64,000 bases of DNA. Origin: Azolla caroliniana. Its lineage: Eukaryota; Plantae; Polypodiophyta. This document shows, piece by piece, positions 18,836 through 49,775 of the stretch (its first letter is position 1; every line of letters begins with the position of its first letter). The DNA is taken from NCBI GenBank assembly GCA_043228905.1, contig JBHGNT010000013.1, positions 11,842,001 through 11,906,000 of the forward strand, written 5' to 3'. The notes below the pieces were generated by a model that was given only the letters and a program-made list of their open reading frames with translations, was not told the DNA's origin and ran no database searches. Both the position numbers and the translations under genes were made by a program.

Positions 18836-19328
18836 CTTGTTTTTAAGATAACCTTGAATTGTTTCTTGAAAAGATATATATAGCCTTGACAACTTGCCCA
18901 AAGCTTGAACATATATGCCAAATCTATTAACATGCTATCATCAACAATAATTTTGAGTTCTCAAGACATAATATTGAGTTTTTTTCCCCCAAAATGAAGC
19001 TACTTTCCCATTAGTTAGGAAGGATTATTACAAAGAGACTATACAAGGAGTCTTATACATAGATCGGGGAATCTCCCTCCGATCAAGTTCAAGAAAATGA
19101 GACTAGTTACATCGCCTTTCAGACTGACTACTTAATGTAAGTACCTATAGCTAAAAATGACGCCCTTCAATGTTGGCTAGTACGAGACAACTCCTAGGGA
19201 CGATGTCGTGACGATTTTCGGCTACGGTGTGAAACCGAGTGAGACGAATAAACCAAGGATGTGCAACATTGCACATACACTTAGCAAATAAGCCTCCTAA
19301 GGCCTAGTGGCACTTGAGTTCATACAGA

Positions 19329-19402
19329 GGGGTGCAAGCAAGGTTTGAACCTTGCACCTCTAAGATACAAGATAATTGCCTTACCACTAGGACAACTATC
19401 AC
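19329..19402 (-). promoter_or_regulatory. tRNA-like Pol III type-2 promoter cassette in the element A LTR (second copy at about 22207-22280)
   Basis: A-box-like TGTCCTAGTGG, 32-nt spacer, B box GGTTCAAACC inside the hairpin GCAAGG-TTCAAA-CCTTGC. Confidence 0.6.
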
Positions 19403-19855
19403 ATAGTGTAGAATTTATGTATTTCCTTTTCATATACAAATTATAGACGAAACAACCATAGAAAACCATGTACACAAAACCATGGTTTTAAACCCATGGT
19501 TTGTGCATGACATAAGCAAAACCGTGTGCACAAAACCATGGTTTTAGCCCATGGTTTTGTGCATGTCACAAGCATGGAAAGACCTATAAAAGCCTCTAGT
19601 TGGGCTTGTGTAAGGGGGGCTCAATATGTGATATCACCAACACCATTATCATCAATATAATTATATTTGTCTTTATCTTCTTCATTATTTTCTACTTCTC
19701 AAGTGTACAAGCTTTCTTCTTCTCAAGTGAACAAATTCCGTCTAATCTTACATTGATCGTCATCTCTTCGATAATTCGGCGAACATCCTCCCTAGTCCAA
19801 GACCCCGGTGGTCGCTCGAGTAGCACACGCACGCGCGAATCTTCGCGACATCATT

Positions 19856-19873
19856 TGGTGAACCCGACGTGAA
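19856..19873 (+). other. Primer-binding site complementary to tRNA-Trp
   Basis: TGGTGAACCCGACGTGAA is the reverse complement of the plant tRNA-Trp 3' end ..TTCACGTCGGGTTCA-CCA. Confidence 0.85.
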
Positions 19874-19894
19874 GAGCAGTAGGGGAGGACGAAG

Positions 19895-21979
19895 ATGGAT
19901 GGCGAATATCTCATGGAGGCAATGTCAAAAAGGATGATGGAGTTTCTGAGAGAAGGGAAAAGAAGAAATGAAGCCCAACAAGCCGTCGACAAGGTAGTCG
20001 AACGAATGAGCTATTTCAACGGTGCCGAAGTCCAAAGTTTCCTAAAAGTCTACAATGCGGAGATGGATTCAAGAGGTGTGGACAAAGCTATGAGGCTAGA
20101 GTACTTTTGTCGGGTGGTGTCTCAACCGATCTTCAAAGATGTAACAGAGCTTCTAGAAGCTCATGATTCGTGGGCAAATTTCGAGAAGGCTCTATTGGAG
20201 GAATATGGCTATGAGAGACTGAAGGGACGAGATCGACGCAAGTTTGACCAATGGGTGACATCAGCGAAGACCTACCAAGGTGCGACACAAGCATTCGTAG
20301 ACTTCGAGCATCATTTTTCTCAATTGTCGGAGCGGGAACAAAGATTGGTGGGGGTCGATAAGGTCCTTATGTTCGTGAAGTCAATCGATCGAATGGAAAG
20401 GATGGCGATCGGCCTCAAACTCGAAGAAGATGATGGTGCAAATGGCCTCATCGAGGATTGGAGCAAAGTGGAAAGTGTATGCCGACTACACGATAAGGGG
20501 CAAGCGAGAATATCGATGACAACAAGACGGCCCATGAGGGACGATCGAAGAGGGACGAGATGCAACAACGCACCACCAACAAAAGAAATGAAGCTTAGAA
20601 GGGAGACAAAACCGAGGCGAATGGTGATCGAGGAAGAAGAGACCTCCCAACAAATGCGGGTTAATGAAGTGGCCGATACAAAGGCTCTCGTTCGGTATGA
20701 CGGTACCGAGAGAGAAGGTGTGAAACAAGTCACCTTCTTGTCTTACAAAGAAACGACAGCGAAGGAGGAGGCCGATGACTCGAGGACGGCGAACGCCACT
20801 TCGAGGGAGGATAAATGTTTCGGAACACGCATTGTGTACGAAACATCGGGTGATGACGGCGCAAGCATGAGAAAAGCTTGCATGATCGAGGGAGAAAAAG
20901 TGTTTGAGTCTGAAGAGATTGAGGAGGTAGCCATGACAAACGACATCGAGTCGGAGGTGGCTATGGATGAGTTGACGACGGATAGCCATGTCGACACTTT
21001 CTTCACGCTTGTTCCAGAGACTTCGGCGGTTGCGCCCATGTGCCAACGTGAGACCGGAGAGACGGAAGGTGGTGACGGGAAGACGAAGGCCCAACACAAG
21101 GAGGAAGAAGATCGAGGAAGAAAGGATATCCCCACACCTATTCTAGAGACTTCGGCGGTTGTGCACGTGCACCAACGTGAGACCGGAGAGACGGAATGTG
21201 TGGACAAAAAAGAGGACGACCGGAAGGGCGATGAAGAAGACAAGGTAAATGTGCATGAGCGAAGGGGTTCCTTCACACCGGTTCCGGAGACTTCGGCAGT
21301 CGAGACCGTGTGTCGGCATAAGACCGAAGATAAAGGAGGTGGCGAAGAGGAGACAATATGGCTCGCGGCGAGCATACATGGAGGGAAGGATATGGCCGAC
21401 GTGGAGGCCAAGGATGAAGCTGCGGTTGAGTTCGATGGAGAGGTTGCATGCGGGAAGGAAGGAAGAGTCGAGAACCGGTTGAACCGGAAGACGATCCGGC
21501 CGGGATTCCGACCCGAACGAAGGAAGATCCACATGGGAGCCGATCGACCGGGGCCGACCCGGCCGAAACCTGATTCGGCGAAAATCGATCGGACGATTCC
21601 GATCCAGAAGGGGGCCGACCCAGCCAGAATCAATCGGTCGAGCCCGACTCGGGGAAATGTGAATGCAGACGAAGGCCAACCAAGCCAAGAAGCGATCGGT
21701 GGAGACCGATCCGGACAAGGGCAAACCCGGCCTAATCGGAGATCGACACGAACGATCTACAATACCCAGTTGAAGACGATGAGCGTGAGAAGTGGCCAGG
21801 AGTCCAATCGAAGGACACGCATGGTAGACGAAGGAAGAGCGGTCGTATCGACGACATCGTTCGGTAGATCTACTACAACCGATCGGGGAAGAAAGTGTGA
21901 GCGCCGGATATGGTGGATCGGGTGGCAACGGTGGTTCGGTTGGAAAGATTGCGCATACTCGAAGTGGAAGATAAAGTAG
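19895..21979 (+). CDS. Gag-like protein with acidic repeat region and basic C-terminal tail (694 aa)
   Basis: FNG..V..FL..Y..EM and W..FEKALLEEY capsid-like motifs; three ETSAV-core repeats; no PR, RT or IN motifs. Confidence 0.7.
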   Translation: MDGEYLMEAMSKRMMEFLREGKRRNEAQQAVDKVVERMSYFNGAEVQSFLKVYNAEMDSRGVDKAMRLEYFCRVVSQPIFKDVTELLEAHDSWANFEKALLEEYGYERLKGRDRRKFDQWVTSAKTYQGATQAFVDFEHHFSQLSEREQRLVGVDKVLMFVKSIDRMERMAIGLKLEEDDGANGLIEDWSKVESVCRLHDKGQARISMTTRRPMRDDRRGTRCNNAPPTKEMKLRRETKPRRMVIEEEETSQQMRVNEVADTKALVRYDGTEREGVKQVTFLSYKETTAKEEADDSRTANATSREDKCFGTRIVYETSGDDGASMRKACMIEGEKVFESEEIEEVAMTNDIESEVAMDELTTDSHVDTFFTLVPETSAVAPMCQRETGETEGGDGKTKAQHKEEEDRGRKDIPTPILETSAVVHVHQRETGETECVDKKEDDRKGDEEDKVNVHERRGSFTPVPETSAVETVCRHKTEDKGGGEEETIWLAASIHGGKDMADVEAKDEAAVEFDGEVACGKEGRVENRLNRKTIRPGFRPERRKIHMGADRPGPTRPKPDSAKIDRTIPIQKGADPARINRSSPTRGNVNADEGQPSQEAIGGDRSGQGQTRPNRRSTRTIYNTQLKTMSVRSGQESNRRTRMVDEGRAVVSTTSFGRSTTTDRGRKCERRIWWIGWQRWFGWKDCAYSKWKIK

Positions 21980-24454
21980 ACGAGCGTGCAGAGGAACTCG
22001 GTTGATCACCGTTGCCAAAGATCTCACCTCTTCACCTTTCTCGGCACATACCGGAGGATGTGCGGGTTTGGTGGGGGTGGATGTCGTGACGATTTTCGGC
22101 TACGGTGTGAAACCGAGTGAGACGAATAAACCAAGGATGTGCAACATTGCACATACACTTAGCAAATAAGCCTCCTAAGGCCTAGTGGCACTTGAGTTCA
22201 TACAGAGGGGTGCAAGCAAGGTTTGAACCTTGCACCTCTAAGATACAAGATAATTGCCTTACCACTAGGACAACTATCACATAGTGTAAAATTTATGTAT
22301 TTCCTTTTCATATACAAATTATAGACAAAACAACCATAGAAAACCATGTACACAAAACCATGGTTTTAAACCCATGGTTTGTGCATGACATAAGCAAAAC
22401 CGTGTGCACAAAACCATGGTTTTAGCCCATGGTTTTGTGCATGTCACAAGCATGGAAAGACCTATAAAAGCCTCTAGTTGGGCTTGTGTAAGGGGGCTCA
22501 ATATGTGATATCACCAACACCATTATCATCAATATAATTATATTTGTCTTTATCTTCTTCATTATTTTCTACTTCTCAGGTGTACAAGCTTTCTTCTTCT
22601 CAAGTGAACAAATTCCGTCTAATCTTACATTGATCGTCATCTCTTCGATAATTCTGCGAACATCCTCCCTAGTCCAAGACCCCGGTGGTCGCTCGAGTAG
22701 CACACGCACGCGCGAATCTTCGCGACAACGACAACGAAGGGAGGGTGGTAAGTGAGTCGGAAACAACCAGCATGGGGGCTAGTAGTTCCACCTCGGGCCA
22801 CTTCCTCCTTGTGTCACCATAGGCGTGTTTCGCCATTTCTGCCAAAAGCGCAAACGAGTAGTGACCACGCCATTGGAATGGCAACAAACCTCGCCTAATT
22901 GCCCTCGTAGGCAACTAATAAGCGCAAACCATATGTCCATGATCACTTCCTCCGGGGGCCGCACCAGATCTTGAAAGACCTTTAGGCAACGTGCATTCCA
23001 TACATACCACAGGGTGAAGCCTGCGATCGGCATCCAAATTTCCGGGAACCTAGGGGATGCGGACTGCAAGCCTCTCTCAAATTGAATCTTGGCGATTTTG
23101 CCTCTCATGCATACGTAACACTAACTATCTGCATTGAAGACGTCCGTCCACCTATCAACGGAGTGATCAATCCATGCCGCAACACTCCAAGATGTTGTGC
23201 CTTCCACTTCGCAAGCCGCAAGGAGGCGAGTCACTCTATCCCATACATTTTGAGCTTGAGGGAAATCCCACAGACAATGCCTCAGAGTCTCAATAGGTGA
23301 ATGGCAAAGTGGGCAGCCTAACGGGCCACCACGTTTACCTAGCCATTCTCCAACGGGAACCACATTATGACCGATTTGCCACCAAAAAAACTTTATCTTT
23401 TCCGTCTTGTGGCGATGCCATAGACCCTTCCAAAAGGTAATGAGCACCTCATCAAGGATGTCCAATGTACGCCAGCCATTGCGTAAGGTGTCGTCTAGCT
23501 GTAGTTGAAAAGTTCGGCCCAATTTAGTGTTGTACTCGAAGAAATGGCGAAATCTGTCATCATGTTTCCACCTGAAATCCCCTGGGTCCCATTCTAGTTG
23601 GACAAGGGGACGACAACCATATACCCATAACTTCCAATGGGGTTCCACCTTAGTAACATCCGGGTCTGTCTTCCAGATGTTATCAACCTGCGCCACCACA
23701 CGGATTGGGTGCCAAGAGCCCCTACTCTGACTCTCCCCAAAAATTGTATTATCTCTTCCCGATCCGCTCACGCCCTTCAACAACTTAACCCTTCCAGCCT
23801 CATCAAAGAGACCGAACCAAGCATCTTCTCTCACCTCCCCCATCGGAACCCTATCAACTACCTCAACTATCAATCCTCGCATTTTCATGGCTCCCTTGAG
23901 AGGAGGGAGTGGGACCTCCTGGGCTCCTCCTAAAGCCACTGTGCGTCTCCAATCATCTATAGAGTGGAGCCTTGTTTGAGCCAGCTTTCCCCATGCTAGG
24001 CCCTTAAGCTGCCCTAACATCATGTCGTCACTTGTTTGCATCTGAGGGTTCCAAAATAATGGTTGTCTAGAACACTTGATTAGTGTCTCCGGCATGTGCT
24101 TGACCATATGATGTCGTACGTGACACCATGCCCATTGTCATGATATGGCAAGACTCGAATCCATGACCTTATGTTAAATGGGTCGAGCTCTTGACCATTA
24201 TACCTTTTATTATAATACATAAAATATTATTTTCATTTAAGTTTTATTATAGGAAACTAATGTATATTCCAGATTTCTTTAGAACATTCTAGAAGCTTCA
24301 GGACTCCTCCTGAGAACACTATAAAAGGAGGCACAAGGCATTATGTTGAACAAAATTGGTTCAACACCAATCTTAAGCCTCATAGCCATTTTGTACTTAC
24401 TCTTCATATAATATATCATCTGTTATCATCATCTCTCTCTCTCTCTCATCCTCG

Positions 24455-24491
<37 letters not shown>

Positions 24492-29281: not shown

Positions 29282-29348
29282 TATCCGGACAAACCCGATC
29301 CTCAATCAGCACCGACTCGTTACACTCTTCGTCTTAAGGGGGGGATAG

Positions 29349-29640: not shown

Positions 29641-29685
<45 letters not shown>

Positions 29686-32649: not shown

Positions 32650-34075
32650 GCAGCGGATGGGCGATGCTACGGCAATCCTCACACCAGTCCAGAGACTCCG
32701 GCGGTCGGCCCGAGAGCCGACGTGAGGCCTAGAGAGATGGACGGTGGCGGCAAGTGAACAGGATCCCGAGATACGGTGTAGAAGTGCGGATGGGCGGTCC
32801 TATGGAATCCTAACACCAATCCGGAGACACCGGTAGTTCAAGCTAACATGGCAATGTGAGAAGGATGGTGGTGGCAGGAAACGGGAATCGGCGATGCGAG
32901 AAGTGCGGATGGGCGATCCTACGGCGATCCTCACACCGATCCGGAGACTCCGGTAGTCGGCCCAAGAGCCGGCGGGAGACCTAGAGAGAAGGACAGTGGC
33001 GGCAGGTGAACGAGATTCGACAAAGCAAAGGATGAAAGAGCGGAAAGAGGTATCAGGCCGGCGATGTAGCCACGAACCAGATACGGACCCGACCGACAAA
33101 GTCGACAAGACAAAGATCGGACATGCTCAGTACACGAGTGGGTGACCCAACAAATCGGAGGCCCAAGACGGATCCTTCACACCTGTCCGGAGACCCCGGC
33201 AATTTGGCCGATGTGGCAACATGAGACCGAGGGTAATGGAAGGTGGCAGCAAGGGGACAAAGGTGGCAACAACAGAAGCACCGAATAACCGAGGCATCAC
33301 GCGAACGAAGGAGGCCATGCGGGCCGGAATGCGGCAAGGGTGATCTTCCGGTAAGATGCCGGGGACACCCGGTCAAGGAGTGGTGCGCCGAGTCGGAAAG
33401 GGCACACCCGAAGTGGATCGGAAGATGTGCGTGTGGCCATCGAGGGCCAAAGCAAAGCACGGGTACAGGATGGCGTTCGGCACAGGTGGTGCTGAACAAG
33501 GAAGGCGGAAGACGGCAAACGGTGGTGCCGGAAATGAGAGCACGGGAGCGTAACAAACTACGTGGACTAGAGACCAGAAACATGATTGAGGGTTGGAGAA
33601 GGATCCTCCACACCCGCTTCGGAGATCTCGGCGGCTCGGTCGGAGTGGCAACGACTGGCGTGGCAGGCCAAACCCGAGGTAACAAGCTGGTGGGGGTGAG
33701 GGGATGACGCCAAGCGGAAGGCTCTGAACCAGTGGTAGCAACGGAAGATGAAAGTGACCAAGCGGGCTATTACGGGGTGTTCCTCATACATGGAGGACAC
33801 CGGTATGCGGAGAAGTGGCGATGCACGATCTGGCCGGGTGAGGGCTGACGACGCGTGCATGGGAAGTAACCGGTGTTCGGCACGGGTGGTGCCGAACTCG
33901 AGAAGGGGATGCGTGGCACACAGAGGTGCCAGAGCGGGAATACATGCGCGAAGATGGGTTGCCGGTCCAAGTGTTCTCGCGTAGAAGGCCGGAGAGGGAT
34001 CCTCCGCACTGATCCGGAGACCTTGGCAGTTCGGCCGTTGTGGCAATGTAAGACCAAGGAGAAGGTAGGTGGCGG
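32650..34075 (+). repeat. Six or more degenerate copies of an internal repeat (ATCCTCACACCGATCCGGAGACTCCGGCGGTCGG...GAGACC.AG.GA)
   Basis: Copies near 32675, 32805, 32925, 33170, 33600 and 33998. Confidence 0.7.
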
Positions 34076-36397: not shown

Positions 36398-39300
36398 TGT
36401 CGAATACAAGTGTATAATGGACGTATTCACACTATCCCTTTGTATAGCTCAAGTTTGGGCCATTTGTGTAATTAGCATAAAGGGTAGTTGCCCTAAGTTT
36501 GTCACTATATAAAGTGACCTAGTAACCTTTTTGTAAGGTTGGGTTGTATTATTATTTCTATTGAATAGAAAGAGTCTTTTGTGCCTCCTCTCTCTCTCTC
36601 TCTCTGTCTCTGTGCACGACCTTGAAACTGTCATACGCAGGTACTCAACAGAATCGAATCCTACTTGATCTTCCGCATCGACACGGCCTTGTCTTCAACA
36701 TCTGGTATCAGAGCCAGGTTCCTCAACCCGTTGTCGGCCGTCGTCTCAGCTTGCACAACATTCGGTTCTTCGCGTCATCACAGCCTGCACAGTATTCGGC
36801 CTTTCGCTTCATCCTAGTCTGCAAAGCATTCGGCCTCTTGCGTCATTCGAAGAAACAAAGAAGAAAGTAGGCAAACACAAGCCTGAATCTCGCTGCGTTA
36901 GATCATCACTCGGAGTAAGCCAGCCGGTTGTACTCTGTTCCTTATGATCGTAACCATTCGAGGTGAAATCCCCTTGTGCAACATTGACACGATCGTGCTC
37001 CACTCGGTTAAACGGCATCCGAAGAGGTCATCAAACGCTGCTCGCCGCTCATTGTAACCACTCGGTGCAGATCGTTCTCAAGACAACAACCCCAATTCGT
37101 GCTTCATCCGGCTGATCGACATTCGGGAGGATCAGTTGGATCCGTCTCTCTCGTCGCTGCAATCACCCGAAGCAGAATCGGTCCAGACAATCGGTTTCAA
37201 TAATCGGTATTTGGCATATATATTCGGAAGCGAACCGGGCTCACTCCGACTCGGCAACATTCGGGAAGACCAGTCGGTTCTGTCCCTCAAGTTACCGGAG
37301 TCAATTCGAGCAAGTTTAACAATACATATATCCGAAGCCGAACCGACTCGGGTTCAAATCCGACTAGAACGATATCGGGTGAGCCAACCGGCTGCACTCC
37401 AACAAGGTTCGTAGTCAACTCCGAACCGAGCTTCGTCAACCGAAACCAAATTTGATGGCATCAACATCCGGCTCGTCAGAAATGAGTCTACGAAAGTTTG
37501 ATGGATCGAACTTCAACTTCTGGAAGGAGCAAATGCAGGACTATCTCATAGTCAAGGGGCAAATCGATCCCATCGAAAATGAAGAACCTCCAGAAGGATA
37601 CAAACCAATTGAGTGGCAGAAGCTGGACAGAATCGTCCGCACCACGATTCGGATGCACCTATCGGAATCGGTATACTTTACGGTGCAATCGTGTACGACA
37701 GCATTCGAACTGTGGAAAACATTGTCGGACACCTACGAAAAGAAGGTCGCTGCAACGAAGATGTTTCTGATCCGGCGCCTCTACAACTTGCGGATGAAAG
37801 AATCCGATTCGGTTCAAGCACATCTCAATGAGTACGAAAGCATAAGCTCCCAAATCTCATCTCAGGGGACGGCAATCGAGGATGAACTCAGAGCAATGAT
37901 ACTCATGAGCAGCCTTCCCTCATCATGGGAAACTTTCGTCACAACCGTGTGCAACGCGTCAACCACGGCTGTTAAATACTCCGAAGTCACGAGCGCAATC
38001 CTGACCGAAGCAGCTCGGAGAAAGTCTTTCGCCAAAGACTCAACAGACGACGCTTATGTAGTACAAGGTTCGACAGACCGATCGAACGTACGAGGAAGAG
38101 ATTCCTCACGGCAGTCGAACAATCAGCGAAGACGGAGCCAGTCACGGGATAATCGAATCTGCAACTATTGCAAGAAACCCGGACACATCAAAGCCGACTG
38201 CCGCGCACTCAAGAACAAGAACGACAAGTCTCAGAAATCAGACAAGAAGAGTGGCCGGCATGAGGAGATCAATTACGTCAGCTTCTCAGCTAATGTGCTA
38301 CCAAACGACCCGAATATACTATCAATCGAAAATCCAGTCGGATCAGAAGTTCTGCTCACGACTGAAGAATCGAGCACATGGCTCTTAGATTCGGGCGCGT
38401 CATTTCACGTGACTCCTCATCGATCCCAATTTCGGCAATATACGATCCGTCACTCCGACTCAGTTCGAGTCGGCAACTCGCAACACTGTGACATCATTGG
38501 AATCGGCACAGTAGAGCTCAACCTTGCAGGTGGCTCTACACTTGTACTTCACAATGTCCGACATGTACCCGAGCTCTCAAGGCCATTGATCTCAGTCGGA
38601 CAACTAGATGAAGACGGCATTCGTGCCGGTTTTTCTTCGGGAGGGTGGACACTCCACAGGGGGAACCTCCTGCTTGCTAGAGGACCCAAGATACACTCAC
38701 TGTATCCGTTACATGTTACGCTCAGAGAGGGTAACCTGTTTTTGGTGGATATTCCTGTGTCATCACTATGGCACAGAAGATTAGGACACCTCAGCAAGGC
38801 CGGCATTACGCACCTATCTAGAGCCGGATACATCCCTAAACTCTCCTTCTCGGACCATCAATTTTGCGAACATTGCCAGTATGGCAAACAAGCAGCCGCA
38901 TCACACCCGACATCAGCACCAAGAGAATCGAGACCTCTTGATTTAGTCCACTCGGACGTCTGTGGCCCAATGCCGCATCAGTCTCTCGGCGGTGCCTCTT
39001 ACTTCGTCAGTTTTATTGACGATTCGACTCGAAAGGTGTGGGCTTATCCAATTCGCACCAAAGATCGTGTCTTCTCGATCTTCTCCGATTGGCTTGCTAT
39101 GGTAGAAAATCAAACTGACCGAAAACTGAAATGCTTTCGGACCGACAATGGGGGAGAGTTCAAATCAGAAGAATTCGTCAAATTCTGCCGACAACGCGGC
39201 ATCCGACGTGAATTTACAGCACCACACAGTCCGGAGCAAAATGGGATTGCAGAACGCATGAATCGGACAATCCAAGAACGGATAGTTTCCATGCTCCAAC

Positions 39301-41982
39301 ACTCCGGACTGTCGGATGGCTTCTGGGCAGAGGCTCTACTCACGGCAGTACACATAATCAATATGTCGCCAAGCAGACCTCTAGGACTTCAAATTCCTCA
39401 GGAACTATGGATCGGCAGTAAGCCGAATTACGACAAGCTGAGGATCTTCGGATGCGAGGCGTACGCCCTTATTCCGAAAGATGATCGCCGAAAACTTGCA
39501 CCTCGGTCCAGGAAATGCATTTTCCTTGGATATGGATCAGACGGCGAAATGGGATACCGACTCTGGGACCCCGAACGCAGACAAATCGTTCGAAGTTCGG
39601 ACGTTGTGTTCAACGAGTCGGCTATGAATCCATCAGTCCAAACACCGATCGAAGTCCGAAGGGTAACATTTTCCGATGTGCCGACCCTTCAAGAAGGCCC
39701 CGCTCTTAACACACGGTCAGCTTCACGGGTAGCTGAACCTTACACTACCGACTCGGACAACTCTGACTCGGCACAACAGAATAACTCACTTTCGGACCAT
39801 CCGACCTCGATACCCGATACGACCAGTCCAATCATACCTCGACGATCCGAGAGACTGTCGCAACCTCCGGAGAGGTATTCTCCTGGAATTTTCTTCACCG
39901 ACGCCGGCGAACCGACGTCTTACGAAGAAGCATCGACATCTGTCGATTCAGCCACCTGGCATCTGGCGATGGAGTCGGAAATGCACTCCATTCGGGCAAA
40001 CAAGACTTGGGATCTGGTCGAATTACCTAAGAATCGACGTGCTCTTCCTTGCAAGTGGGTTTATCGACTAAAAGAGACGTCTGATTCGACCACCCCAAAG
40101 TACAAGGCCAGATTAGTTGCGAAGGGCTTCCGACAAGAATATGGCGTCGACTTTGACGAGATTTTTTCACCAGTGGTGAAAATGACAACCCTTCGTTTTC
40201 TACTCGGCGTAGTGGCAGCCGACAACTTGGAGCTGATTCAGCTAGATGTCAAAACAGCCTTCCTCCATGGTGATCTTGAAGAGGAAATTTATATGGAGCA
40301 GCCAAAAGGCTTCGTGGCACCTGGCCAAGAACATCTAGTCTGCCGACTCAGGAAGAGTCTATACGGCCTCAAACAGGCACCGCGACAATGGTACAAGAAG
40401 TTCGACGACTTCATCCAATCGATCGGCTTCTCAAAAAGCGATGAGGACCATTGTCTTTTTACCAACACAGCTCAAGATGGATCACCCATCTTCCTCATCA
40501 TTTACGTGGACGACATGCTAATTTCTGGACGCCACGCGGGCGAACTTGCCGATCTCATTCGGCAACTACGGTTGAAGTTTGCCATGAAGGACCTCGGTCC
40601 GTCACGACACATACTTGGCATGAAGATTAGTCGGCATCGCGATAAACGACATCTTTTTTTGTCTCAGACCGACTATATCGGACGTGTCTTGGAACGCTTC
40701 AACATGCAATCAGCCAAATCTGCTTCAACCCCGCTCCCCATGAATCTTCGGCTCTCTCAGCGAGACTGCCCGACATCCGGTCCGGAGGGGGAAGATATGA
40801 AGTCGGTACCGTATGCACCGGCAGTCGGCTCCCTTATGTACCTGATGGTCGCGACACGGCCTGATATCTCTCATGCCGTAGGAGTCGTTAGCAGATTTAT
40901 GCACAATCCTGGCCGATCGCATTGGAACGCAGTCAAGCATGTGTTCAGATATCTGGCTGGCACAAAAGACCACGGCATTCTTTTCGGTCCGAACTCAACC
41001 TCAGGCGTAGTCGGTTACACCGACTCGGACTTCGCCGGCTGTATAGACAGTCGAAAATCAACAACTGGATACTGCTTCAAATTCGGCAATGGAGCAATTT
41101 CGTGGAAGTCGAAACTTCAGGAGTGCACAGCGACCTCAACGACCGAAGCAGAATATGTAGCTGCGTCCGACGCTGCAAAAGAAGCTTTGTGGCTCGGCCG
41201 GCTGGCGCACACGTTTCGACAAGTCGACCATGACTCGGCCCCAGTTGTCTATAGCGACAGTCAAGGTGCTGTTGCCTTGTCGAAAAATCCGGTTCACCAC
41301 AATGCCTCCAAACATATCGACGTTCGATATCACTTCGTTCGGGACTGCGTCATTTCAGGGAAAATCGGTCTAGAGAAAATATCCACAACCGACAATGTCG
41401 CAGATGGAATGACCAAGTGTATTTCGGCAGACCGCTTTCGGTCCCTTCGGCATCAGATGGGCGTAACGACAAACCAGTCCGGTTAGAGCCGGACACAGCG
41501 TAGGATGGTTTCAGACAACCGACATCAGTTCCTTAATGATCGGCTTCAACTCTTCCGACCCGACCAGTTCGGTCTTCTGCCTTCGGATCCTGCCGACTCG
41601 AACAAAACTGATATGTCCGAGAACCTAGGTTTATACCTGTAATCTTAGATAACCCATGTATACGCCCATTACGGGGGAGTGTCGAATACAAGTGTATAAT
41701 GGACGTATTCACACTATCCCTTTGTATAGCTCAAGTTTGGGCCATTTGTGTAATTAGCATAAAGGGTAGTTGCCCTAAGTTTGTCACTATATAAAGTGAC
41801 CTAGTAACCTTTTTGTAAGGTTGGGTTGTATTATTATTTCTATTGAATAGAAAGAGTCTTTTGTGCCTCCTCTCTCTTTCTCTCTCTGTCTCTGTGCACG
41901 ACCTTGAAACTGTCATACGCAGGTACTCAACAGAATCGAATCCTACTTGATCTTCCGCATCGACACGGCCTTGTCTTCAACA
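36398..41982 (+). mobile_element. Copia-3: intact, very young Ty1/Copia
   Basis: 303-bp LTRs 36398-36700 and 41680-41982 (one difference seen); TSD GAAGG; Met PBS at 36703-36714; PPT ACGGGGGAG. Confidence 0.98.
37455..41486 (+). CDS. Intact Copia Gag-Pol polyprotein (gag, CCHC, PR, IN, RT, RNase H)
   Basis: Uninterrupted ORF of about 1343 aa; CNYCKKPGHIKADC, WLLDSGAS, FRTDNGGEF, IYVDDM, SKHIDVRYH. Confidence 0.97.
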   Translation: MASTSGSSEMSLRKFDGSNFNFWKEQMQDYLIVKGQIDPIENEEPPEGYKPIEWQKLDRIVRTTIRMHLSESVYFTVQSCTTAFELWKTLSDTYEKKVAATKMFLIRRLYNLRMKESDSVQAHLNEYESISSQISSQGTAIEDELRAMILMSSLPSSWETFVTTVCNASTTAVKYSEVTSAILTEAARRKSFAKDSTDDAYVVQGSTDRSNVRGRDSSRQSNNQRRRSQSRDNRICNYCKKPGHIKADCRALKNKNDKSQKSDKKSGRHEEINYVSFSANVLPNDPNILSIENPVGSEVLLTTEESSTWLLDSGASFHVTPHRSQFRQYTIRHSDSVRVGNSQHCDIIGIGTVELNLAGGSTLVLHNVRHVPELSRPLISVGQLDEDGIRAGFSSGGWTLHRGNLLLARGPKIHSLYPLHVTLREGNLFLVDIPVSSLWHRRLGHLSKAGITHLSRAGYIPKLSFSDHQFCEHCQYGKQAAASHPTSAPRESRPLDLVHSDVCGPMPHQSLGGASYFVSFIDDSTRKVWAYPIRTKDRVFSIFSDWLAMVENQTDRKLKCFRTDNGGEFKSEEFVKFCRQRGIRREFTAPHSPEQNGIAERMNRTIQERIVSMLQHSGLSDGFWAEALLTAVHIINMSPSRPLGLQIPQELWIGSKPNYDKLRIFGCEAYALIPKDDRRKLAPRSRKCIFLGYGSDGEMGYRLWDPERRQIVRSSDVVFNESAMNPSVQTPIEVRRVTFSDVPTLQEGPALNTRSASRVAEPYTTDSDNSDSAQQNNSLSDHPTSIPDTTSPIIPRRSERLSQPPERYSPGIFFTDAGEPTSYEEASTSVDSATWHLAMESEMHSIRANKTWDLVELPKNRRALPCKWVYRLKETSDSTTPKYKARLVAKGFRQEYGVDFDEIFSPVVKMTTLRFLLGVVAADNLELIQLDVKTAFLHGDLEEEIYMEQPKGFVAPGQEHLVCRLRKSLYGLKQAPRQWYKKFDDFIQSIGFSKSDEDHCLFTNTAQDGSPIFLIIYVDDMLISGRHAGELADLIRQLRLKFAMKDLGPSRHILGMKISRHRDKRHLFLSQTDYIGRVLERFNMQSAKSASTPLPMNLRLSQRDCPTSGPEGEDMKSVPYAPAVGSLMYLMVATRPDISHAVGVVSRFMHNPGRSHWNAVKHVFRYLAGTKDHGILFGPNSTSGVVGYTDSDFAGCIDSRKSTTGYCFKFGNGAISWKSKLQECTATSTTEAEYVAASDAAKEALWLGRLAHTFRQVDHDSAPVVYSDSQGAVALSKNPVHHNASKHIDVRYHFVRDCVISGKIGLEKISTTDNVADGMTKCISADRFRSLRHQMGVTTNQSG

Positions 41983-42100
41983 GAAGGATGACTCTCTACG
42001 CTTATGTGTCGACTACCGAGGTCTCAACAAACTCATTGTGCGCAACCGCTATCCGCTACCTCTCATCCCCGAACTCCTTGATCGGCTCCGAGTTGCGCAT

Positions 42101-44310
42101 TGTCGTGAAAAATTTCGACCAGAGGCGGAAACCGGGAAATATTGGCTACATCGGCGGGGTGCAGCATATGCGCTCACCCTTGTACATTTAGTGTGAATAA
42201 CGAGGGCGCCTTTATGGCGCCGAAGGGTAATCAAGTCGGGACAAGAATCTCATGTAAGTCGGGATTTATCCCACATTGTAACGCATCTCCGTCCTTGTTC
42301 TATAAAAGGAAGGGAGCGCCTCTTGTGAAGGGGTTGCCCATTTTGTATTAATAGGGTATACCGTTAGACAGAGCGATGTTCTCTCTTTCTCTCTCTCTCT
42401 CTTGTTTAGGGTTTCTTCTTCTTCTTTTTCTTTTTCTTCTTCTTTTTCTTCTTCTTCCTTGTCCTTTTGTGTGTCGAGCCTTGGCATCTAGCGTTCCAGT
42501 TTTCTGCCTTGTACTCTGTGCAGGACCCCGCTCGGCGCGACAAGCCCGAGAGCTCCCCGACCGGCGGCTTGGTAGTAGACAACGGTTGTATCTCATGCGG
42601 CCTAGGTTCGGCTTGAAGTCGGTGTTGAATCTTGTTATCTTGTAAATACATATACATGTGGTTGTGCATATTCGGGTCTCTGTTGGTGTGTGCGTGTGTG
42701 TCTTAGTGTTTCTTTCTTGCTTATGTACATGTTCGTGTGAGAGTCAATGTTGCATGCCTGCTCTCTATCTCTCTCTCTCTCTCTCTCTCTCGCTCTCCTC
42801 TCCCGTCGGTTGCTTCCGGTGTGCTCCTGGGGGTGCCCCGGAAAAGGTGAAGCGCGGCTTCCTACGCTCCGTCACTCCCTAGTCCACGACCCCCGTGGTC
42901 CCGCCTTTCTACACGCATGCGCGTAACAACGCGACAACGGGCGGTGCCGAATAAAGGAAGCGGAACGCGGCACATGGAGGTGTCGAAGCAGAAAGGCGAG
43001 CACAAAGAATGGATTGCACAGTTCGGAGGTAGCGCGTAGAAGGCCAGGGAAGGATCCTCCACACCGTTTCAGAGACCGTGGCGGTTCGAGCCGACGTGGC
43101 GGCGTAAGACCATGGAGAAGGAAGGTGGCAGCGAGAGGATGAAGGCAACGCGAAACAACATGGGATGGCAATCAAGGCAACCCGAATGGTCGACGGAGGC
43201 CAAGTGGGCCACTACGGGCGTTCCTCAAGCGGGTGACATCGGGCATACAGTGGAGAGCGGAGCGTGCATACAGCCGAACAAGAGCCAGTGGAAGTACGTG
43301 TACTATGGAGATCGCGGCGAAGGACCCATCGACGGGTTGAACGAGCCTACGGGGAGGTAAGCGCGAAGGAAGAACCGAAGCCGACGAATCAAACCGGCAG
43401 CGGGGCCAGGATGCGGATTATGGAAGACCGGTTTTTCACCGGCCGAAATCTCTCACCCTTCACTGGATTTGGCACGTACCGGTGGACGTGCGGTTTGGTG
43501 GGGGCAGATGTCGTGAAGAATTTCGGCCAGAGGCGGAAACCGGGAAATATTGGCTACATCGGCGGGGTCCAGCATGTGCACTCACCCTTGTACATTTAGT
43601 GTGAATAACGAGGGCGCCTTTATGGCGCCGAAGGGAAATCAAGTCGGGACAAGAATCTCATGTAAGTCGGGATTTATCCCACATTGTAATGCATCTCCGT
43701 CCTTGTTCTATAAAAGGAAGGGAGCGCCTCTTGTGAAGGGGTTGCCCATTTTGTATTAATAGGGTATACCATTAGACGGAGAGACGTTCTCTCTTTCTCT
43801 CTCTCTCTCTCTCTCTTGTTTAGGGTTTCTTTTTCTTCTTCTTCTTCTTCTTCTTCCTTGTCCTTTTGTGTGTTGAGTCTTGGCATCTAGCGTTCCAGTT
43901 TTCTGCCCTGTACTCTGTGCAAGACCCCACTCGATGTGACAAGCCCGAGAGCTCCCCGACCGGCGGCTTGGCAGTAGACAACGGTTGTATCTCATGTGGC
44001 CTAGGTCCGTCTTGAAGTCGGTGTTGAATCTCGTTGTCTTGTAAATACATATACATGTGGTTGTGCATATTCGGGTCTCTGTTGGTGTGCGTGTGTGTGT
44101 CTTAGTGTTTCTTTCTTGCTTATGTACATGTTCGTGCGAGAGTCAATGTTGCATGCTTGCTCTTTCTCTCCCTCTCCCGTCGGTTGCTTCCGGTGTGCTC
44201 CTGGGGGTGCCCCGGAAAAGGTGAAGCGCGGCTTCCTACGCTCCGTCACTCCCTAGTCCAAGACCCCCGTGGTCCCGCCTTTCTACACGCACGCGCGTAA
44301 CAACGCAACA
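42101..44310 (+). mobile_element. Element C: short non-coding member of the A/B family, lacking a PBS
   Basis: LTRs 42101-42936 and 43509-44310; 572-bp internal region; same pre-PPT motif and PPT; decayed 4-bp TSD GCAT/ACGT; removing it restores Gypsy-2 RT ..[15 protein letters not shown]. Confidence 0.88.
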
Positions 44311-47300
44311 ACGTGTTTTCTCCAAAGTTGATCTGCGTGGAGCGTACAATCTAGTACGCATCAAGCTGGGGGATGAATGGAAAACCGTATTTTGAACACG
44401 GTATGGGCATTTTGAATACAAGGTAATGCCGTTTGGTCTTACTAACGGTCTCACAGTTTTTTAACATATGATGAACGATATATTCCAGGAATATCTTGAT
44501 CTTTTTGTTGTCATTTACCTCGATGATATTCTCATTTTCTTGCCAAACATGGAGGAGCACACTCGGCAAGTCCGATTAGTTCTTGCCAAACTTCGCGAGC
44601 ATGACCTTTATGCCAAATGCGAGAAATGCGAGTTCGACTGTACCTCGATCGAATTTCTGGGCTACATTATCTCGCCCACTGGCATCACCATGGATATGAA
44701 GGTCTCTGTCATTCAGGCGTGGGTGACTCCAAGGCGACTTAAAGATGTGCAATCCTTCCTCGGCTTCGCGAATTTTTACCGTCGCTTCATCAAGGGGTTT
44801 TCCACCCTAGCACAACCTCTTATCGCTCTCACCCATAAAGGCACTCCATTTTTATGGACCTCGGAGGCGCAAAATGCGTTCGACTCACTCAAACACGCAT
44901 TCATCATTGCCCCGATGCTGCTACATGCCGACCCCACAAAACCCTTCCAAGTCTAAACCGATGCCTCTGACTTTGGCATTGGCGCCATCTTATCCCAGGC
45001 AGACGACAACAACCTAATGCACCCAGTGGCTTACTATTCCCGAAAATTTACGGCATCCGAAATCAATTATCCCATTTACGACAAGGAGGTTGTTGTTATC
45101 ATTGCTGCCTTTGAAGAATGGCGACCCTACTTGGACGGCGCACAACATCGTGTCCAGGTAGTGACTAATCATAAAAATTTAGTTTATTTTTCCACCACTC
45201 GTACTTTGAATCGAAGGCAGGCCCGTTGGTCGACATTTCTCGCCGACTACGATTTTGAGATCGTATTTCGACCTGGTGGCCAACATGGGAAAGTTGATGC
45301 CCTTTCTCGCCGAGCTGACCTTGCACTCCGCCCTAGGGATGCTGCTTATGCTCAACAATCTAGACGTTTGTTGAAACCCTACCAATTGCATCTTTTTGCC
45401 ACTTGTATGTTGCAGGATGATTCTTTAGTCCAACAAATCACTGATGCATCCAAGACCGATGCGTTCGCCAACGAGATTCGAGATAGTCTGCAAAACCCCT
45501 CCAAGGCGACCAAAAGGAAGGATCTTGACACCTTCACCATACAAGAGCTTTTGTTGTTCCGAGATCATCTCTTATACGTCCCAGAGGGCCCATGTCGCAC
45601 CCGAGTGTTGCGGGAATGCCACGATGACCCACTTGCAGGTCATTTCGGGGTCGCGAAAACCCTCGAGCTAATCTCTTGGGGGTATTGGTGGCCACAACCA
45701 TGGAAGTTGGTCAAAGAATACATAAAGATTTGTGAGGTTTGTGCTCACTCCAAAGCCATTCATCATCGGCCATACGACTTACTACAGCCGCTTCCATGTC
45801 CTCGTCGTCCTTGGGCCTCTATCTCTATGGACCTGATAACTGATCTACCCTTGGTCAATAACTATGACTCGGTGTTGGTCGTTGTCGATCGGTTTACGAC
45901 GATGGCTCACTTCACTCCATGCTCCAAAACCATTTCCGGAGAAGGAATGGTGCATCTACTACTCAACAATGTGGTACGCTTGCATGAACTCCCCGATGAT
46001 GTCATCTCGGATCGTGGACCCCAGTTTGTCTCTCACTTCTGGCAGCGCCTGCTACAAACTTTCAGCATCTCTGTCAAGTTGTCCTCCGCTTATCACCCCC
46101 AAACTGACGGGCAAACGGAGCATGTCAACCAAATCCTTGAGCAGTATCTTCGGTGCTCGGTTAGTTACCAACAACATGATTGGGTCAACTTACTTTCGCT
46201 CGCGGAATTCGCCTACAATAATTCTCTCCATGCATCGACTGGCGTCACTCCCTTCTTTGCCAACTATGGTTTACATCCTCGCTTCAACATTTCCCTTCCT
46301 ACCACTTCCGTGAACCCTTCGGCAGAGGATCGCGCCCGCATTTTGGAAGAACTACATCATGATTTATCCTTGGAGCTTAGTCTTGCTAGTGAACGATACA
46401 AGAAGCAGGCTGATCGCCATCGATCTTCCACTCCACACTTTGTCGTTGGAGACATGGTCTAGTTGTTACGTCGACACATCTCTACTACTCGTCCATGTGT
46501 GAAACTTGATTACAAGAAGTTGGGACCATTCCGTATCATCGAGTGCATCAATCCCGTCGCCTTCCGGCTCGCCCTTCCATCCCACTTCCGGATTCACGAT
46601 GTTTTTCATGTCTCCCTCCTCGAACCCAATTATGCTTCACAACTCCCAGGACGTCAGGCCCCACCACCACCACCTGTGCAATTGACGACATGGGAGGAAT
46701 ACGAGGTCGACCAAATCCTTGACTCGCGTTGGCACCGTCGACACTTGCAATACCTCGTCCTATGGAGGGGTTACCCCATGTCGGAGGCCACGTGGGAACC
46801 ATCGGCAAATTTACAAAATGCCCTAGAGGTCGTCCAAGATTTTCATCACTGATATCCCCACAAACCAACGGCTGATTTGGGAAGGTGGTGTAGGAGGGGG
46901 GATAATGTCAAGATTCGAACTCTTGACACGACCATGGTATAATCTAGTATTATGAGTTAACCAAGATATCTAGTACATAGTTATGTTTGTAATTGATCCT
47001 TATTATTTTGCTAGCATCATGTGCATAGTTGCTCCCTTTTAGTATTTACACTTGGCACATGCATGCATACCTACATGCTCTATTGTAGATTCACATGCGT
47101 GCAACAAGTATGCATGCCATGTAGTATAAATAGAGGAGTTCACCTTGAAGGAATTCAAGGTGAACAACACCAGTTATGGAGTCTTTCCTTTAATACTATC
47201 TTCTTTCTTGTCCATTTGGTTATCTTCTTGCTTGTCCCTTGAGCTTATGATCCGCGACACCGGGGACTCGGAAGGAGGACAGGCGCGGTCCGGAAGTCTA

Positions 47301-49775
47301 CGGGTCGGGGCTGGTAAGGAGCGGACGAGACGGTCGGGTGCTGGTAAGGCAGAGGAACCGATTGATCATTGTCGCCGAAATCTCTCACCCTTTTCCTTTC
47401 TTGGCACATACCGGTGGATGTGCGGTTTGGTGGGGGTGGATGTCGTGAAGATTTCCGACTATAGTGTGAAACCGAGGTGGAATGGGCAAGTCGGTGGTGT
47501 GCAACATGTGCACATGTATAGTATGAAAATGGTGTATAGAATAAGGGGGAGTATTTATCCCACATTGTAATGCATCCCTCTCCTTGGTCTATAAATGGAG
47601 GGGAGCACCTCTTGTGAAAGGGGTTGCCGATTCCGGATCGAAGCCAACAAAGCTTAAGGACTCCACCATCCGTCTCCCTAGTCCAAGACTCCCGCGGTCT
47701 CGCCTAAGATCCTACACGTACCCGCGGAAATCTGCGACAACGGGCAAGAGTGTAAGATAGCTGGAACCGGGGAGGTTCCCATCAGATTGCCAAATGGCAA
47801 CACAATAACCTTACACCAAGTTCGGCACGTACTTGATCTAAAGAGGAGTCTGGTCTTCATCGGCATGCTAGCCGAAGACGGGTATCGAATGACTCTACAC
47901 AAGTCGACATGGGTGATCAGCTGGGGAAACCTAAAAATTGGGAGTGGGTACAAGTACAACAATTTGTACCCATTGATGGTGATCAACCCTGAAGGGGCTG
48001 TGAACGTAGCCAAAAAGACCAACCCGAACCTATGGCATGGCCGACTTGGCTATATGTCACAAGCCGGACTTGATCGACTGATGTTGGTCGGCTACATTTC
48101 GAAACTCTAGGCAAAGATGGACTTTTGCGAGCATTGTTGATATGGGAAATAGACCCGAAGTCTGCACTCTCTCCACTACGAGATGGTACGACAACCCCTA
48201 GAGCTCGTGCACACAGACATATGTGGGCCCATGTCAGTGTGATCACTAGGAGGTTCCCGGTACTTCATCACATTCGTAGATGACTGTACAAGGAAAGTTT
48301 GGGCATACTCCATCAAGTCCAAAGATGAAGTGCTCAAGGTCTTCACTCGATGGATACCTAAAGTGGAGAACTGGTTGGGACACAAAGTGAAGACACTTCG
48401 ATCCGACAACGGAGGTGAGTACAACTCTAGAGCCTTCAAACAGTACGTGTCCGAAAAAGGGATCCGGCATCAAAAGACCATTCCTTACACACCCATGCAG
48501 AATGGGGTGGCTGAACGGATCAAGCAAACGATCCAGGAGAGGGTGATGGCAATGCTCCAGCAAGCCGGACTGAAGCCGGAATTCTGGGCCGAGGTATTGC
48601 AGACGGCAGTGTACCTGATAAATCTATTGCCGTCTAGAGCAATCAGGCTCGAAGTGCCACTGGCACTATGGTCAGGCAAACAACCGACCTACAATAGGCT
48701 CTGTATATTCGGATGTGAAGCCTATGCGTTCATCCCCAGGGACAAAAGGACAAAGTTGGTACCCCATGCAACATTTGCATATTTCTCGGTTATGGAACCG
48801 ATGGGAACTTCGGCTACCGACTATGGGACCCTAAGAACCGGAAATTGATCCGAAGCAATAACGTAGTCTTCAATGAAGACTGCATCTTCTCTCAACGGAA
48901 CCAACAGAAAACAGTAGGCGAGAAGGTATCCTTCGAAGATGACGTCATCATAGAGAGATCGACCCACCGGGCCGAATCAAAGAGTCAACAAACAGTTGAA
49001 CTCCAACCAACTGACAACGTCCTAGTCGACACCGAATTGGCAATAAGTCCCAATGTCGAACTCAAAGACAAAGCCGAATTGACAAGAGTCGACAAAGGCA
49101 GAGTCATTAAGAGGCAAGTCAGAACTGAGTCAACGACAACCACAGGGGAGAACAACTAGACACCGCCGAAATCCCAAACCGGGGGCGGAATACCGAACAA
49201 GACTCCTGACTCAACTGGTTTAACAAATGCCGATCGTAAAAAAGAAGCGATCGAAGAATCAAAACCAGATATTACGGCACCTAGTAGATCTGGACAAGCT
49301 CGAAGGCAAACAGAGTTTTATCAACTGGGCCTCGACTACGTCAACTACTCGGATGCAGGCGAACCAAGCACATATGACGAAGTTATGGCCACACCAGACG
49401 CCGAAACATGGCTGCAAGCCATGAAATCCGAAATGGACTGGATTCATCAGAATAAGACATGGGAACTGGTCGAACTACTAGCAGGAAGAAAGCCGCTCCC
49501 TTGCAAATGGTGTTCCGATACAAGTATGTATCCAACTCAGAGAAACCCAAGTACAAAGCTCGGCTTGTCGTGAAAGGATTCAAATAGGAATACGAGGTCG
49601 ACTACGACGAGATATTCTCACCAGTAGTCAAGATGAACACCCTTCGACTCCTACTAGGAGTCGTAGCGATAGAAGACCTAGAGCTCGAGCAGATGGACGT
49701 AAAGACAGAATTCTTACACAGAGATCTGCAAGAAGACATATACATGTCTCAACCGGTAGGCTTCATGGCGACCAG

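Follow-up and report, generated by a model that had tools for sequence, protein, structure and literature searches.

A Gag-only LTR retrotransposon family with 4-bp target site duplications centred on CG in a window of the Azolla caroliniana assembly

The window analysed here, meaning the whole stretch of 64,000 nucleotides taken from an Azolla caroliniana contig (JBHGNT010000013.1, positions 11,842,001 to 11,906,000), consists entirely of transposable elements (TEs) between 19 and 64 kb. Three of these elements, A (19204-22727), B (31296-47739) and C (42101-44310), all on the forward strand, form one LTR family with common TGTCGTGA...GCGACA termini and a single polypurine tract (PPT) cassette. 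They are recognizable as LTR retrotransposons by direct repeats with TG...CA ends (TGTCG...CGACA), short target site duplications (TSDs), a PBS and a PPT. The PBS is of the Trp type across the family, exact in A, with two mismatches in B and decayed in C, and the LTR-end motif GTCCAAGAC(C/T)CC was matched eight times, as against 0.8 matches expected. The coordinates, termini, LTR-end motif, PPT region and Trp-type PBS (in A and B) given by the initial annotation were all recovered. The interiors measure 2.2 kb in A, 2.6 kb in B and 0.57 kb in C.

Element A has an LTR pair and a single open reading frame in 3524 bp. Its 5' LTR (19204..19850, 647 bp) pairs in a self-BLAST comparison with the 3' LTR (22082..22727) at ~99.3% identity (99.2-99.4%). 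Five nucleotides past the 5' LTR lies an exact PBS, TGGTGAACCCGACGTG (19856..19871), which is probably the complement of the known 3' end of plant tRNA-Trp; the sequence itself is conserved. The open reading frame (19895..21979) encodes 694 residues and is followed by the PPT cassette (22044..22081), composed of a 6-bp hairpin, GCACAT at 22044-22049 with ATGTGC at 22058-22063, and then the polypurine tract GGGTTTGGTGGGGGTGGA. Copies of ACGA flank the element on the left (19200..19203) and on the right (22728..22731). The surrounding DNA was called repeat on the basis of read depth, paralogous empty sites and a neighbouring LINE-type zf-RVT reading frame; no Pfam domains were found in the direct flanks.

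Element B is interrupted by a much larger insertion. Its 5' LTR (31296..32311, 1016 bp) is followed by a Trp-type PBS with two mismatches, TGGTGAACTCGATGTG (32316..32331), and by a decayed internal region without pol (32312..34754), which matches contig L002 by blastn and is related to the long Gag-only reading frames P0016 and P0024; residues 861-1047 of the latter align with 34190-34702 at 47% (tblastn). An unrelated Ty3/gypsy element (34760..47259) is nested here between 5-bp TSDs (CCGGG) and itself contains a copia element (36398-41982, TSD GAAGG) as well as element C. The remainder of B comprises the 3' end of its interior, including the PPT cassette (47265..47440), and a 3' LTR of 299 bp (47441..47739) that lacks ~710 bp found in the 5' LTR. 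Across the parts common to both, the two LTRs are ~94% identical. B is flanked by ACAG on the left (31292..31295) and ACGG on the right (47740..47743).

Element C has LTRs at 42101..42936 and 43509..44310 that are 91-94% identical, separated by a short internal region (42937..43508) in which the PBS is decayed or deleted, no open reading frame was found and the PPT cassette stands at the end. Its flanks are GCAT (42097..42100) and ACGT (44311..44314). In both B and C, about one in three differences between the LTRs is a CpG transition. The four letters ACGG directly behind the left LTR of C (42937-42940), which had been put forward as supporting a further target site, are indeed present; since an alignment as a variable spacer between LTR and PBS plus a decayed PBS is just as good, they are ambiguous as a fourth target site or as the footprint of a self-insertion into the PBS and were left uncounted.

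The description of the family as pol-less is upheld. Neither Pfam searches of the A reading frame nor tblastn with the pol of related elements detected any pol domain (protease, reverse transcriptase, RNase H, integrase) inside A, B or C, the interior of B proper included, and a Gag frame is all that is carried. Within the window, the partner pol matches only two unrelated gypsy elements, and the pol of the gypsy element nested in B is just 24% identical to it. The N-terminal ~210 residues of the A product correspond to a Gag capsid (CA) domain, the remainder being variable and repeat-rich with a Trp-rich tail. Pfam returned no match for this product, even at an E-value of 10, and Foldseek searches with its AF2 model (pLDDT 80.8) gave weak capsid matches only (E 0.25). 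A second structure comparison aligned the capsid with dArc1 (Z 10.4) and with the Arc N-lobe (Z 9.2, rmsd 1.7 Å over 65 residues), and profile alignment by hhalign with the Gag of an autonomous relative in contig L008 gave a probability of 99.4 (E 7e-22). Among eight copies from several subfamilies, which have a ~2-kb Gag-only interior wherever a contig holds both ends, dN/dS is 0.2-0.5 and there are no stops, while Gag-only subfamilies are just 64% identical in the capsid domain. On these models and alignments, the A reading frame encodes a protein with a predicted retroelement capsid fold, shares ancestry with the Gag of autonomous relatives and is under purifying selection.

The flanks set this family apart from its neighbours. 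As originally described, the other LTR elements of the window have 5-bp TSDs (GAAGG, ACCAG, TATCC and CCGGG), the exception being a chromovirus (24136-29791) whose flanks, CCCAT/CCCGC, are imperfect. The flanking 4-mers of the family are ACGA/ACGA for A, ACAG/ACGG for B and GCAT/ACGT for C, and a duplication of 4 bp is now established for all three. In the case of A, contigs from four public runs contain the single-copy, empty form of the site, joining 19200 to 22729 and skipping 3528 bp, that is, the 3524 bp of the element plus 4; three bases at the joint are ambiguous, and paralogue variants show identical spacing. For B and C, each host flank was aligned on its own to the pol proteins of paralogues. 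The host reading frame (that of a copia element for B) and the residue spacing correspond to exactly 4 bp at both, whereas 5 bp would break the frame. At C, the left copy of the duplicated host codon is CAT and the right copy CGT, aligned to K287 of a paralogous reverse transcriptase.

The proposal that these sites reconstruct to NCGN, with CA as a product of CpG decay, was examined in a collection widened by metagenome contigs. The three window insertions and 13 more from metagenome contigs give 16 events and 22 flanks. Some contigs of a single study could sample the same genome, although their flanks differ; most metagenome contigs have the form interior-LTR-interior without flanks (L003, L004/L014, L027), or have one flank (L002), and inform on cis signals rather than on TSDs. 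Of the 22 flanks, 17 have CG at the two central positions, three have CA and two have TG, with no others, and counted by event the centre is CG in 14 of 16 and TG in the remaining two; the target consensus is ACGT. Autonomous relatives show the same pattern in perfect 4-bp duplications, L008 having CCGC/CCGC and a solo LTR of L005 having ACGC/ACGC, while the flanks of L007 do not match (ACGG/GCAT). The binomial probability of so many CG centres lies between 1e-12 and 3e-17, about 1e-13. That the CG centre reflects chance or selection in a small sample could be argued from the initial three sites, two of which have mismatched flanks and which taken alone give P ~1e-3 to 1e-4, but CG in 14 of 16 independent events (P below 1e-12), together with the same motif in 186 published elements of the Phygy lineage (PMC6317226), leaves this explanation with practically no probability.

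A further alternative is that integration favours any flexible pyrimidine-purine (YR) step within a 4-bp stagger, with the CA and TG flanks dating from the insertion itself. All 22 flanks do have a YR centre, RY, RR and YY being absent, and YR enrichment is general among integrases and strongest with 4-bp TSDs (PMC4422553). However, CG is the rarest YR step of the background (4.7%, compared with 6.8-6.9% for CA/TG and 5.2% for TA) and yet occupies 17 of the 22 flanks, whilst TA occurs in none. In B and C, moreover, one flank has CA where the other has CG, which requires mutation after insertion, and the CGT codon at the right flank of C suits the host protein better than CAT. A general YR preference is accordingly judged improbable, and the CG-centred reading, with CA as decay, is retained; the two TG flanks (GTGT in L001 and CTGC in L017) are without a partner copy that would prove decay.

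The PPT cassette connects the family to elements that do carry pol. Twelve copies conserve it, among them autonomous relatives and copies from the liverwort Riccia sorocarpa, and in its hairpin alignment 97% of the cells pair, one of the pairs being compensatory. The 125-bp bin that contains the cassette of A (21975-22099) has a read depth several-fold to more than 10-fold that of other bins, from which it follows that a larger clan shares this region. The three R. sorocarpa loci (L006, L025 and L026) have no detectable LTR pair within 10 kb and hence yielded no TSD. Contig L003 reads, in order, pol (RNase H-integrase), PPT cassette, LTR, Trp PBS, Gag-only reading frame, PPT and LTR; the nearest pol partner is known from this one contig only, which could be recombinant or chimeric through assembly. 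The same cassette is found in the autonomous elements L005, L007, L008, L009 and L027. The two of these that have full flanks (L007 and L008), from another sample, are ~11.1 kb long with 2.4-kb LTRs and a ~6.3 kb interior filled by gag-pol, but their PBS differs from that of the family and is probably of the tRNA-Thr type. Pfam searches of the reading frames of L003, L005, L007, L008 and L009 found only RVT_1, RT_RNaseH(_2), Integrase_H2C2, rve and DUF4100, with no chromodomain, and the Gag-protease and pol frames of the partners revealed no extra archaeal-type RNase H.

In its shared diagnostic features, the family matches the published profile of Phygy, a non-chromovirus Ty3/gypsy lineage of Physcomitrella patens in REXdb, from which it appears to derive. 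Phygy has 4-bp TSDs in 100% of elements, an NCGN motif and a tRNA-Trp PBS in 81% (PMC6317226 main text, Additional file 5; Neumann 2019), and its TSDs are elsewhere given as mostly 4 bp (PMC6911290). The likeness extends, besides the putative tRNA-Trp PBS, to a partner pol lacking both chromodomain and extra RNase H, and the probable tRNA-Thr PBS of the relatives corresponds to the published minority type. The differences are that the window copies have no pol and measure 2.2-3.5 kb without nested inserts, as against 7.7-10 kb for Phygy, whose polyprotein fills the interior; that the autonomous L007 and L008, owing to their 2.4-kb LTRs, exceed this range at ~11.1 kb, size being a descriptive trait; and that Phygy was described as Physcomitrella-specific, whereas the host here is probably a fern and relatives occur in Riccia liverworts. 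The target habit had been taken as new by the initial annotation, but was already published for Phygy in 2019 (PMC6317226, Additional file 5). Membership of TatI, a clade of lycophyte Tat elements from Selaginella, would also account for 4-bp TSDs (100%) and a tRNA-Trp PBS (75%; PMC6317226 Additional file 5). This assignment is very improbable given that the archaeal-type RNase H that defines TatI was not seen in the Gag-protease and pol frames of the partners, that a large non-coding region or extra reading frame is likewise lacking, and that NCGN has been reported for Phygy only.

With two LTRs, a PBS, a PPT and one Gag-only reading frame, and with a related autonomous family as the presumed source of pol, the Phygy-like elements of the window also resemble TR-GAG elements, such as AT5TE33540 of ATCOPIA63, which transpose in Arabidopsis (PMC8704663). 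Most TR-GAG elements described so far, however, are copia elements or members of other lineages that have 5-bp TSDs and insert without sequence specificity, whereas here the Gag-only state has split into subfamilies and is under purifying selection. Taken together, A, B and C very probably represent a non-autonomous Gag-only family of the TR-GAG type and of Phygy-like origin, which would obtain pol functions in trans and integrates with 4-bp duplications centred on CG. Each element would retain its cis requirements and its own capsid, namely TGTCG...CGACA LTRs, a putative tRNA-Trp PBS and Gag, and the conserved hairpin and polypurine cassette may direct plus-strand priming. Protease, reverse transcriptase, RNase H and integrase would be supplied by the pol-bearing relatives, and the original suggestion, a partner integrase that prefers targets centred on CG, remains the best reading, since these relatives share both the cis signals, namely PBS type, PPT cassette and LTR termini, and the 4-bp CG-centred TSDs. 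This integrase would cut with a 4-bp stagger, almost always requiring a central CG within an A-C-G-T consensus, and thereby generate the observed pattern of NCGN duplications; where one flank has CA or TG, this is probably later CpG decay.

The physical basis may be a sharp bend at the central pyrimidine-purine step combined with symmetric base contacts, by analogy with retroviral intasomes of 4-bp stagger. Those of prototype foamy virus and MLV likewise have a palindromic target consensus with a central pyrimidine-purine step, whose flexibility is strongest for short staggers, but their preference is a weak statistical one (PMC4422553), whereas the central CG here appears nearly obligatory (22 of 22 flanks being CG or its deamination products). 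The integrase might instead, as originally suggested, recognize methylated CG and so steer insertions into silenced transposon DNA as a safe haven. All three window insertions do lie within other TEs, as originally noted, and contig insertions are found in a copia gag (L002), beside CACTA transposase genes (L005) and in an LTR of the element's own clan (L009); the CpG transitions among the LTR differences of B and C further suggest that these regions are probably methylated. Nesting in three of three cases is nevertheless uninformative, being expected by chance where 19 to 64 kb is all TE, and sequence preference alone accounts for the CG pattern, in line with the finding that local base preference in retroviruses is largely independent of chromatin (PMC4422553). 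A role for methylated CG is therefore considered unlikely. The more specific proposal, that the partner integrase reads the CG methylation state or a methyl-CpG-bound factor, so that the lineage and its Gag-only parasites home to silenced DNA, is distinctly unlikely; if true, this would be the first LTR-retrotransposon integrase to couple near-absolute dinucleotide specificity to an epigenetic mark.

Few LTR retrotransposons integrate in a sequence-specific manner. To our knowledge, the only earlier report of a near-obligatory central CG concerns Physcomitrella Phygy and consists of one sentence and one supplementary table. While the habit itself (4 bp, NCGN and tRNA-Trp) is thus already known from Phygy, what is new is that Gag-only derivatives have diversified and that the host is probably a fern. 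The present observations widen the CG habit to this probably fern genome and to liverwort relatives, show that it goes together with a conserved hairpin-plus-PPT cassette and indicate that it has been inherited by a diversified Gag-only parasite lineage kept by selection. For annotation, LTR finders that assume 5-bp TSDs would miss or mis-bound such abundant elements. The family also offers a natural system for asking how an intasome gains dinucleotide specificity and whether CpG methylation matters.

Self-comparison of the window reveals that, from 19 kb on, LTR retrotransposons are nested within one another, among them three copies (A, B and C) of a Gag-only family. Element A (19204-22727) possesses two 647-bp LTRs that are ~99.3% identical, an exact 16-nt primer site assigned to tRNA-Trp (TGGTGAACCCGACGTG, 5 bases past the 5' LTR), a sole ORF of 694 amino acids (19895-21979) and, directly upstream of the 3' LTR, a cassette composed of a hairpin and a polypurine tract (PPT). 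Element B (31296-47739) has a 5' LTR of 1016 bp, a 3' LTR of 299 bp that is without ~710 internal bases, a decayed interior and the primer site of A with two mismatches. It is split by a gypsy element unrelated to the family (34760-47259), which in turn hosts a copia element (36398-41982) and element C (42101-44310), the LTRs of the latter (42101-42936 and 43509-44310) having only 0.57 kb between them. The termini TGTCGTGA...GCGACA, the PPT cassette and the U5 motif GTCCAAGAC(C/T)CC (8 matches against 0.8 expected) are common to all three copies. Their nesting within other transposons is the chance expectation in a TE-saturated window. A is probably located within or next to a LINE-like repeat; its flanks are multi-copy by read depth, and a zf-RVT ORF (LINE-type reverse transcriptase C-terminus; 23121-24107, minus strand) lies immediately to its right. 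Elsewhere in the window, an array of ~160-340-bp tandem repeats (2.3-4.8 kb) contains eight minus-strand genes called by ARAGORN as tRNA-Pro(UGG) (2571-4445), and represents either tRNA-Pro genes clustered in tandem or a satellite of tRNA origin. The top named matches of a PPR gene (7365-10199) come from Adiantum and Ceratopteris (40-51% identity), which makes a fern the probable host.

The initial annotation had assigned 4-bp target-site duplications (TSDs) to A, B and C and 5-bp TSDs to the other LTR elements of the window with both flanks visible, and both assignments hold. The latter carry GAAGG (the copia), CCGGG (the gypsy splitting B), ACCAG and TATCC, together with an imperfect 5-bp pair, CCCAT/CCCGC, in a chromovirus (24136-29791) that encodes capsid, protease, reverse transcriptase, RNase H and a chromodomain and whose LTRs are 91% identical. 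The termini of this chromovirus, TGTCATGA...TGACA, resemble those of the Gag-only family, and an LTR of its kind also begins at 63899. Element A is flanked by ACGA on the left and right, and its empty site was sought in Logan contigs of four public runs, one of them under a second species label. Contigs of all four runs join 19200 to 22729 and so omit 3528 bases, 4 more than the length of the element (3524 bp), with 3 bases that could belong to either side; the same spacing was found in variant paralogues of the host repeat. For B and C, the left and right host flanks were aligned separately to paralogous pol proteins from the window. Along the copia polyprotein used for B, the left flank stops at residue 342 and the right resumes at 344, leaving exactly the single residue expected of a 4-bp duplication; with 5 bp the frame would shift. 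Both flanks of C cover residue 287 of a paralogous gypsy reverse transcriptase, where the left one reads CAT and the right one CGT, so the codon is duplicated; CGT (Arg; reference Lys) is the likelier original. The unequal pairs ACAG/ACGG (B) and GCAT/ACGT (C) are therefore decayed copies of ACGG and (A/G)CGT, respectively. In both elements the LTRs have diverged by 6%, about a third of it through CpG transitions, which accords with such decay. The earlier reading of the left-hand CA variants as CpG decay agrees with these observations.

The sites of A, B and C alone yield a P of about 1e-3 to 1e-4 for a CG centre. More junctions were obtained by a word search with the ORF of A, which returned 24 relatives, all in ENA metagenome assemblies, and 15 further contigs were found with the capsid domain. 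The flanks recovered were GTGT (L001), GCGT (L002), CCGT (L013), ACGT (L015 and L023), ACGG (L016) and both ACGT and CTGC (L017), while long contigs with pol-bearing relatives contributed ACGT and a solo LTR with ACGC/ACGC (L005), ACGG/GCAT (L007), CCGC/CCGC (L008) and CCGT (L009). In total, 16 insertion events provide 22 flanks, in which the central dinucleotide is CG in 17, CA in three, TG in two and never any other. The NCGN target proposed from the window copies is upheld: CG occurs in 14 of the 16 events, its background frequency being 3.5-4.7% (binomial P 1e-12 to 3e-17), and the CG centre is beyond chance. Counted over events, the first position is held by A (10), C (4) and G (2) and never by T, and the fourth by T (9), G (3), C (3) and A (1), such that the target consensus is the palindrome ACGT. 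The autonomous relative at L007:3006-14098 has LTRs that are 98.2% identical and unmatched flanks (ACGG left, GCAT right), which suggests recombination between elements instead of simple insertion.

No Pfam domain was detected in the 694-residue ORF of A. Relatives conserve residues 1 to ~215; beyond these the sequence varies, and it comprises reiterated PETSAVAP..QRETGETEGGG units and a tail rich in Trp. The number of repeat units (window 20900-21330, past the capsid domain) differs among relatives, and the Trp-rich C-terminus of the ORF (WWIGWxRWFGWK) is conserved. As a CCHC zinc knuckle was not noticed past the capsid domain of A, nucleic-acid binding may depend on the basic, aromatic C-terminal tail. 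An AlphaFold model of residues 1-227 (pLDDT 80.8) matches retroelement capsids, including dArc1 (Z 10.4, 156 residues), the human Arc N-lobe (Z 9.2, rmsd 1.7 Å, 65 residues) and the Ty3, copia, PNMA2 and HIV capsid proteins. As middling Z scores come easily to helical folds, a profile comparison was added, in which hhalign matched the family to the 886-residue Gag-protease ORF of L008 (probability 99.4, E 7e-22, 174 columns). Across eight copies from several subfamilies (64-96% amino acid identity), the capsid region contains neither gaps nor stops and has a dN/dS of 0.2-0.5, and wherever a contig holds both ends (L010, L014, L015 and L017) the interior is Gag-only and ~2 kb long. Together, these observations identify the family as a long-lived and diversified Gag-only lineage rather than a recent deletion derivative.

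Across subfamilies, 2, 4, 5 or 8 nt separate the CA end of the LTR from the Trp primer site (window 19851-19855 and 32312-32315; L003:3535-3542; L004:222-223), which implies that the U5 end undergoes unusually long 3' processing or that priming is spacing-tolerant. No recognisable Trp primer site follows the 5' LTR of C (42937-42960), where the bases ACGGGCGGTGCCGAATAAAGG allow two readings: a variable spacer followed by a decayed, shortened primer site or, less likely, a footprint left by insertion into ACGT inside the primer site and subsequent LTR-LTR recombination. The hairpin ahead of the PPT comprises GCACAT, an 8-nt loop and ATGTGC (22044-22081, 43472-43508, 47404-47440 and L025:14240-14281, the last from the liverwort Riccia sorocarpa). 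Its 6-bp stem and the PPT are retained in autonomous relatives and in R. sorocarpa, where the loop differs. Two of 12 cassette copies (C and L004) carry a compensatory A-U to G-C change, although both arms may also be read as products of CpG decay. Read depth in the 125-bp bin with the cassette (21975-22099) is several-fold to >10-fold that of other bins, indicating a region common to a much larger clan.

On contig L003, a pol region with RNase H and the integrase zinc finger and core is followed by the PPT cassette of the family and an LTR that begins with TGTCGTG; beyond this LTR come a Trp primer site, an ORF for Gag alone and then a second PPT and LTR. The two LTRs are only 85% identical, so the contig arose either by recombination or by an assembly that ran through a shared LTR; whichever its origin, LTRs and cis signals are common to pol-bearing and Gag-only elements. 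Metagenome contigs are often of the form interior-LTR-interior(-LTR) (L002, L003, L004 and L027) and join different family members through the LTR, with LTRs or interiors differing by ~15% within L003 and L027; they may reflect either paths taken by the assembler or genuine three-LTR recombinants. The pol of L003 shares only 24% identity with the gypsy nested in B; among its relatives are complete elements carried by long ENA contigs and, at 47-64% identity, many proteins of the liverworts R. sorocarpa and R. fluitans. The complete elements possess the same PPT cassette, termini TGTCC...CGACA, 4-bp NCGN duplications and a Gag-protease ORF with DUF4100, and neither a chromodomain nor an extra RNase H was found in their ORFs. 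Their primer site, TGGTGCTTCCACTGAGAG, differs from the Trp site and is presumably that of tRNA-Thr.

The observed cis anatomy, capsid, lack of pol, 4-bp stagger and CG centre accommodate a mechanism in which proteins of pol-bearing relatives would carry out reverse transcription and integration. A symmetric intasome would bend the target at the central pyrimidine-purine step, with added base contacts selecting C and G. Such a model agrees with the palindromic consensus and with the rule by which selection for a central YR step peaks at short staggers (PMC4422553).

The triad of 4-bp TSDs, NCGN targets and tRNA-Trp priming matches the published signature of the Ty3/gypsy lineage Phygy, in which, among 186 elements, TSDs are 4 bp in 100% and NCGN, primers are tRNA-Trp in 81% and tRNA-Thr in 6%, and extra domains are absent (PMC6317226 Additional file 5, Neumann et al. 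2019); mostly 4-bp Phygy TSDs were also described by Jedlicka et al. 2019 (PMC6911290). From these shared features we infer Phygy clade membership. TatI likewise combines a 4-bp TSD with tRNA-Trp; however, its defining feature is an archaeal RNase H, a domain not found in the ORFs of the pol-bearing relatives. Gag-only LTR elements, known as TR-GAG, have been seen transposing in Arabidopsis (PMC8704663). The initial observation of a family without pol and with 4-bp, CG-centred targets is upheld and reinforced, and its interpretation was largely right, although the phenomenon was already published for the parent lineage. Neither dependence on methylated CG nor homing to heterochromatin, both raised in that interpretation, gains support from the present observations. 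No literature was found on Phygy-type NCGN targeting in ferns or on Gag-only Phygy derivatives. What is new here is the existence of Gag-only derivatives of a CG-targeting lineage, in a new host group.
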